Source: Paragordius varius
Taxonomy: Eukaryota > Animalia > Nematomorpha
Assembly: GCA_964247055.1 (NCBI GenBank)
Contig: OZ176054.1
Coordinates: forward strand, 11,656,001-11,720,000
Reading direction: 5' to 3'
Length of the DNA stretch: 64,000 nucleotides
The notes beneath the pieces are model-generated. The model ran no database searches and was not told the DNA's origin. It saw only the letters and a program-made list of their open reading frames with translations. How positions within the stretch are numbered: the stretch's first letter is position 1; the number at the start of each line of letters is the position of its first letter. Position numbers and translations under genes: made by a program. Positions 15,938 to 16,946 of this stretch are shown here, in pieces.

Positions 15938-16946
15938 TTATTTGTTGAAAGGTGAGATAAAATACAGGTTTTCTGGTATGATGGGATTTTTATGCACATT
16001 TATTAAATCTTTCTTGATGGCTCTTAGATCTTCTAAAATATCATCTTCTGGTAATTGGTATACTATGTAGGGTCGTATAACGATTCCAAATACATTGTGT
16101 TAAGAGTTAAGGATAAATATGAAGTGGATTTAAAATCTAAATTACTTTTATAAAGAATATCGGATATATAAATATTAGATAAATACGAAATAATACCGAA
16201 TTGGAAAAAACCTCTAAAGCCAGTATCGAACAAAAATTAAATAGAACATAAATATTTTTTAATCTACGGAAACCTATATATTTTACAATATATTATTTAA
16301 AAATTATGGAGGGTAAGTTAAGAAAATATATTAACTAAAAGGATATCTGAGACGGTAACTGGTTTGTTACGTTTTTTGCCATTATTTCCATTGGCGTTTC
16401 GGAATTCTGGAAAAGGAATGTAACGCTTATTAACTATGAAATATATGCAAAAAAACTACCAATCGGGTCTTTACTTTTTCGTTTAAGGCTACTTAATTCG
16501 GTATAATGGTGTTTTAAAAGGTTATCGGATAACAATTGTAATTTGTAATCAACGTCTTCTTTTGCTAACCTCCTTTCAAAATCCAATTCAATTTCATCAT
16601 TTTTATGTTTGAACTCATAATAATGATCTATTTCAGTTTTAATAAAAAATATATTTATACCTGCCATTGATAAATTTTGATTTAGCTCGTTTTGCAAATC
16701 ATTTATACCTTGAATCCACTCATATAAGGTTTCATTTGCTAAATTTTCTAATTTTTGATCAATTTCATTTAACTTATCTTTGGAATATCTTGTATTAAAA
16801 ATAAATTTCCATACCTTTCTTTAAGATAGATAAATTGTTGTTCAAGGTTCTTAATAATGATCATAGATTTTTGTCTGCTGATAAGCAAAATATTTTTTAA
16901 ATCTATATTTTATAAATTAAATCTAACCCTCCGAATCCCCTTTCAT
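15938..16946 (-). CDS. BRMS1: BRMS1/BRMS1L-like Sin3-HDAC subunit (Sds3 family), 208 aa
   Basis: Exons 16946-16928, 16902-16815, 16788-16661, 16627-16460, 16433-16347, 16074-15938. Protein has coiled-coil NLEQQFIYLKERYSKDKLNEIDQKL and the family motif [23 protein letters not shown]. Introns are 25, 26, 33 and 26 nt (GT-AG) and 272 nt (AT-AC). Confidence 0.9.
16075..16346 (-). other. U12-type (minor spliceosome) AT-AC intron
   Basis: 5' end |ATATCCTTT, branch site TCCTTAAC at 16113-16106, 3' end ...TATAC|. Removal restores the conserved VSG|PYIVY reading frame. Confidence 0.92.

Follow-up and report, generated by a model that had tools for sequence, protein, structure and literature searches.

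A probable U12-type AT-AC intron, orthologous to the human BRMS1L and BRMS1 minor introns, in a Paragordius varius gene whose other introns are 25-33 nt

Within a 64,000-nt stretch of the Paragordius varius genome, referred to here in its entirety as the window, a BRMS1-like gene on the minus strand is interrupted by a 272-nt interval (16346-16075) that is very probably a U12-dependent AT-AC intron, orthologous to the minor intron that human BRMS1L and BRMS1 carry, and that would be cut after the AC at 16075. In the proposed mechanism, the 5' splice site ATATCCTTT would be read by U11 and later by U6atac, and U12 would pair with the branch-site motif TCCTTAAC in such a way that the branch adenosine is bulged. 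Cutting after the AC at 16075 would then join TCA G to GA CCC, bringing back the Ser-Gly-Pro-Tyr of the conserved C-terminal BRMS1 motif. We infer both the actual splicing of this intron and the choice of AC from genomic sequence.

Reading the locus from sequence, we found that the BRMS1-like gene extends over the minus strand from 16946 to 15938 and comprises six exons and five introns. The ATG (16946-16944) opens exon 1 (16928-16946), which ends in phase 1 before a GT, and a TAA stop at 15940-15938 closes exon 6 (15938-16074), which is single-copy in the genome. Four of the interruptions are GT-AG introns of 25, 26, 33 and 26 nt (intron 1, 16903-16927; intron 2, 16789-16814; intron 3, 16628-16660; intron 4, 16434-16459), the 25-33 nt size range that a preliminary description of this DNA had given for them. 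They lie between exon 1, exon 2 (16815-16902), exon 3 (16661-16788), exon 4 (16460-16627) and exon 5 (16347-16433), the last of which ends in phase 1 with KPVTVS followed by a G; the remaining interruption is the 272-nt intron. Intron 3 is in frame and contains no stops, such that its retention would add 11 residues and leave the protein unbroken. Upstream, the BRMS1 start codon (16946, minus strand) stands head to head with a 94-aa J-domain-like ORF (16990-17274, plus strand) at a distance of 43 nt, which implies that the two share a very compact bidirectional promoter or that their 5' ends overlap. Elsewhere in the window, an ORF of 964 aa that carries endonuclease and reverse-transcriptase motifs (22894-25788, minus strand) constitutes a non-LTR retrotransposon and sits in the one part of the window that is richer in G+C (32-34% versus approximately 27%).

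Closer reading of the 272-nt intron (16075-16346; 22% G+C) revealed U12-type signals at the positions that the reading frame requires. Exon 5 ends with the letters GTC TCA G at 16347, the intron opens with ATATCCTTTT at 16346, and exon 6 begins GA CCC TAC ATA GTA TAC at 16074, so that the termini are AT (16346-16345) and AC (16076-16075) and the join encodes Ser-Gly-Pro-Tyr-Ile-Val-Tyr, with the Gly codon split in phase 1 (VSG|PYIVY). The 5' splice site (16338-16346) is the sole occurrence of RTATCCTTT on either strand of the 64-kb window, where 3.05 would be expected, and it falls exactly at the end of exon 5. Near the other end of the intron, the branch-site motif TCCTTAAC (16113-16106), which forms the best duplex with the 5' region of the animal's own U12 (-10.3 kcal/mol) and occurs three times in the window against 1.92 expected, runs straight into a weaker second branch-like motif, TCTTAAC (16105-16099). 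The two branch adenosines lie 32 and 25 nt before the last base of the intron, consistent with the spacing of 25-32 nt previously given for these motifs, and on re-reading every coordinate and motif reported for this intron in the preliminary description proved correct. We estimate the probability that both U12 motifs would occur by chance on the required strand and at the places required by the frame at approximately 1e-8 to 1e-6. The intron itself is present as one genomic copy, is not a repeat, has no stable fold (z +1.7) and gave no Rfam match.

We performed protein searches exon by exon and with a 109-aa read-through that spans exons 3 and 4, together with intron 3 between them, and contains no stops. 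Pfam returned no Sds3 (PF08598) match for any exon or for the read-through, a PDB sequence search with three pieces yielded nothing relevant, and both an Atlas search and word searches, run with exon 6 and a stop-free stretch of 128 aa, came back blank. The sole match of exon 6 in a representative library, a bacterial TPR protein, was rejected as chance, as a 44-aa query cannot reach significance among 1.8 billion proteins, and the sole metagenome-locus match, a bacterial dehydrogenase, was likewise set aside as chance. Because these searches did not recognise the protein, its identity as BRMS1 rests on a short stretch of printed human sequence and on human junction strings. When the exon 5/6 peptide was aligned by eye to the human BRMS1 protein, which is printed in full, with its LVSGPYIVY, in PMC8598058, 22 of 32 residues around the junction were identical. 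The window peptide contains the C-terminal BRMS1 motif (..VSGPYIVY.L...DILED...AIKK), and exon 2, with NLEQQF..LKE, shares the LE.QF..LKE of the human N-terminal coiled coil, which reads LEKQF..LKE in human BRMS1.

The preliminary description had proposed a comparison with the vertebrate BRMS1 and BRMS1L introns, and this comparison revealed identity of both residue and phase. BRMS1L is a recognised human minor-intron gene (Younis 2013 eLife), and the dataset (Dataset EV) of de Wolf et al. 2021 provides, for each human minor intron, 10 exon and 15 intron nucleotides at the 5' end and 40 intron and 6 exon nucleotides at the 3' end. In this resource, the human BRMS1L U12 intron is of the AT-AC subtype (...GTT TCA G | ATATCCTTTT... 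and ...AAC | GT CCA T), and the human BRMS1 U12 intron is of the GT-AG subtype (...GTT TCT G | GTATCCTTT... and ...CAG | GC CCA T). Reading the BRMS1 strings against the printed protein gives L-V-S-G|-P-Y; together, the junction strings and the protein place a phase-1 U12 intron within the Gly codon of VSG|PYIVY in both human paralogues. The window junction, TCA G|GA CCC TAC, shares the codon and phase of both human introns, which argues that its intron is orthologous to a minor intron that is both known and ancient. The likeness to human BRMS1L further includes the AT-AC termini, the 5' splice site ATATCCTTTT, the phase-1 Gly split of VSG|PY and the protein motif that follows; however, the human BRMS1L intron measures approximately 980 nt and carries the branch motif GACCTTGAC 8 nt before its 3' end, whereas the window intron has a perfect TCCTTAAC placed 31 nt before its 3' end. 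The human BRMS1 intron likewise agrees in the codon and phase of LVSG|PY but differs in its GT-AG subtype, its length of approximately 1.3 kb and its distance of 11 nt from motif to 3' end.

A related intron is found in the paralogous Sds3-family gene SUDS3. Human SUDS3 intron 7 is an AT-AC U12 intron (de Wolf et al. 2021), and in the Paragordius varius genome SUDS3 carries a 62-nt, phase-1 AT-AC U12 intron at C3:4913332. The SUDS3 intron resembles the BRMS1 intron of the window in being an AT-AC U12 intron in phase 1, positioned a few residues before the ..EDL block, and within the Paragordius varius genome both introns carry exactly the branch string TCCTTAACTCT, each with a U12 pairing of -10.3 kcal/mol. 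The two nevertheless differ in length (62 versus 272 nt) and in motif-to-3' spacing (11 versus 31 nt), and the SUDS3 junction is shifted by 1-2 residues relative to that of BRMS1 when measured from the EDL block. Judged from sequence, the BRMS1 and SUDS3 introns likely share a common origin that predates the BRMS1/SUDS3 duplication.

The genome examined (110.6 Mb in 44 contigs) also encodes components that would process such introns. Two minor snRNA genes scored above their Rfam cut-offs: U6atac (C2:4857045-4857187, plus strand; 66.3 bits against a cut-off of 33), with an intact AAGGAGAGA box and a TATA-like box approximately 30 nt upstream, and U11 (C5:11395495-11395742, plus strand; 62.7 bits against a cut-off of 39), which starts with AAAAAGGGC, has an Sm site and is stretched to 248 nt by large insertions that the 134-position Rfam model lacks. 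U4atac (C4:4407422-4407525, plus strand) carries an Sm site and scored near its threshold, at 50.7 bits, below the cut-off of 53. The Rfam search of the genome for U12 was blank, but a 17-nt pattern followed by cmscan identified a probable U12 gene (C5:10606517-10606667, minus strand; 34 bits, below the cut-off of 53) in which the first ~30 nt are almost invariant, including the branch-pairing stretch GAGUAAGGAAAAU, and which also has an Sm site. The presence of these minor snRNA genes supports the earlier proposal that this lineage retains the minor spliceosome, for which the preliminary description had suggested an snRNA search. A second, weak U6atac-like sequence (C1:7746829-7746941, plus strand; 24 bits, below the cut-off) keeps an AAAGGAAAGAA box and may represent either a degenerated copy or a fortuitous match. 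An upstream promoter element common to the four snRNA genes was considered and found unconvincing. Family searches of the genome for PDCD7 and CCDC84 were blank with a method that is insensitive, and these blanks say nothing about either protein because the equivalent Sds3 search missed two Sds3-family genes that are present.

To place the BRMS1 intron among others of its class, we assembled eight further U12-type introns from the genome (C3:4913332, C6:5152318, C5 at approximately 2.413 Mb, C1:7023261, C1:10192028, C3:10970487, C4:6187185 and C9:2495909), a sample biased toward short introns by the design of the search. A genome pattern scan for TATCCTT with TCCTTAAC 5-35 nt downstream returned 9 matches, compared with 12 in its control, and a second scan, for ATATCCTTT with TCCTTAAC 36-66 nt downstream, returned 5, compared with 1. 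The 3' ends of the eight were set by reading frame and Pfam continuity. Pfam confirmed the flanks of several introns of this type (RRM_1, Prefoldin, eIF2A, HSBP1 and E2F_CC-MB), and the 3' sites of the HSBP1 and E2F-like introns are supported because the profile positions run on across their junctions, from 27 to 30 in HSBP1 and from 36 to 38 in E2F_CC-MB. Seven of the introns are short: those in Prefoldin (53 nt, the one GT-AG intron here, with 11 nt from motif end to 3' site), an SRSF10-like RRM gene (61 nt, 8 nt), SUDS3, HSBP1 (80 nt, 18 nt), an unnamed gene (L031; 88 nt, 17 nt), an E2F-like gene (93 nt, 22 nt) and a SPRY-like gene (97 nt, 21 nt). The eighth, in EIF2A, spans 1557 nt with a distance of 38 nt. 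All except that of Prefoldin are AT-AC introns, as is the 272-nt intron of BRMS1.

These lengths qualify the earlier suggestion that the U12 intron did not shrink along with the major introns. None of the U12-type introns comes near 25-33 nt, in keeping with that suggestion, but the seven of only 53-97 nt indicate that 272 nt is neither a floor nor a limit imposed by the machinery. The literature already describes species whose minor introns are much longer than their short major introns, some with major introns of ~100 bp and minor introns of 200-1000 bp, and Blastocystis has a mean minor intron length of 42 bp (Larue & Roy 2023, PMC10639083). The BRMS1-like gene resembles the former species in placing tiny U2 introns beside a much longer U12 intron within one gene, whereas the Paragordius varius genome differs from them in that many of its U12-type introns measure just 53-97 nt. 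In the same study, compact genomes such as that of Intoshia linei fall within the comparison of minor-intron conservation, and among animals the system is lost in nematodes, myxozoans, oikopleurids and tardigrades (Larue & Roy 2023, PMC10639083).

The alternative that survives best accepts the U12 intron as real and places the 3' site in use at a proximal AC rather than at 16075, a possibility to which we assign a low probability. Measured from the branch adenosine of TCCTTAAC at 16107, three candidate ACs are available, at 8 nt (16100-16099, the final AC of TCTTAAC), 10 nt (16098-16097) and 32 nt (16076-16075). In human cells, Dietrich et al. 2001 reportedly found that spacings greater than 20 nt activate other sites. 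The two proximal ACs lie close to the human optimum, which a review puts at 11-13 nt (Turunen 2013), and the string AACAC| looks like the 3' termini of the introns read here in SUDS3, L031 and the E2F-like gene. Use of 16100-16099 would produce a 248-nt intron that preserves the frame, changes Gly to Asp and adds eight residues before PYIVY; use of 16098-16097 would produce a 250-nt intron with a frameshift and an early stop, and hence an unproductive isoform. Against this alternative, the uninterrupted human VSG|PYIVY with the same split Gly codon is given by 16075 and by neither proximal AC, and elsewhere in this genome U12-type introns are read with 3' sites 17-22 nt beyond the motif, with Pfam continuity at 18 and 22 nt. 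Overall, the other U12-type introns of the genome place their 3' sites anywhere from 8 to 38 nt beyond the end of the branch motif, a far broader spread than the 8-12 nt of the printed human examples. The AC at 16076-16075, supported by sequence together with the human protein and junction strings, lies 31 nt past TCCTTAAC, outside the human optimum, and gives the human junction. Homology favours the AC at 16075, and the spread of spacings in this genome makes its use plausible, while some unproductive splicing to 16097 is conceivable.

The spacing of the distal site raises the prospect, which we consider possible though short of probable, that the minor spliceosome of this micro-intron genome may have relaxed its branch-to-3' spacing, with a minimum U12-type length of approximately 53 nt as opposed to U2-type introns of down to 25 nt. 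Under this reading, five of the nine U12-type introns, that of BRMS1 (31 nt) included, would have their productive 3' sites 17-38 nt beyond the branch motif, farther than the approximately 10-20 nt that limits the human machinery.

Two further explanations are very improbable. In one, the gap would be bridged by a U2-type GT-AG intron, for instance from the GT at 16370 to the AG at 16063 (308 nt), and the U12-like motifs would be fortuitous. Enumeration of frame-preserving splice pairs did identify three GT-AG and three GC-AG pairs; however, none keeps both the frame and the conserved residues, as all remove the most conserved ones (10 residues or more). Such pairs also exceed 300 nt, roughly ten times the usual size of a U2 intron in this genome, and they leave unexplained a perfect ATATCCTTT and TCCTTAAC at the human junction. 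In the other, equally improbable, the AT-AC intron would be processed by the major spliceosome, as major-type AT-AC introns do exist, but the U12 5' site and branch motif of the 272-nt intron are perfect, and the genome encodes minor snRNAs.

Retention of the BRMS1 minor intron is unsurprising and represents an ordinary inherited feature, since human BRMS1 and BRMS1L are known to carry this intron too. What this analysis provides is one more conserved minor intron, together with located genes for four minor snRNAs, in an AT-rich animal with major introns of 25-33 nt. The BRMS1-like gene offers a clean case of one short gene that would need both spliceosomes, and gene models in Paragordius varius need prediction that is aware of AT-AC introns. 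Some wider interest attaches only to the spacing between branch and 3' splice site, which is unusually long and varies between introns; if the relaxation of this spacing is true, the animal would offer a natural experiment on how each spliceosome gauges distance.
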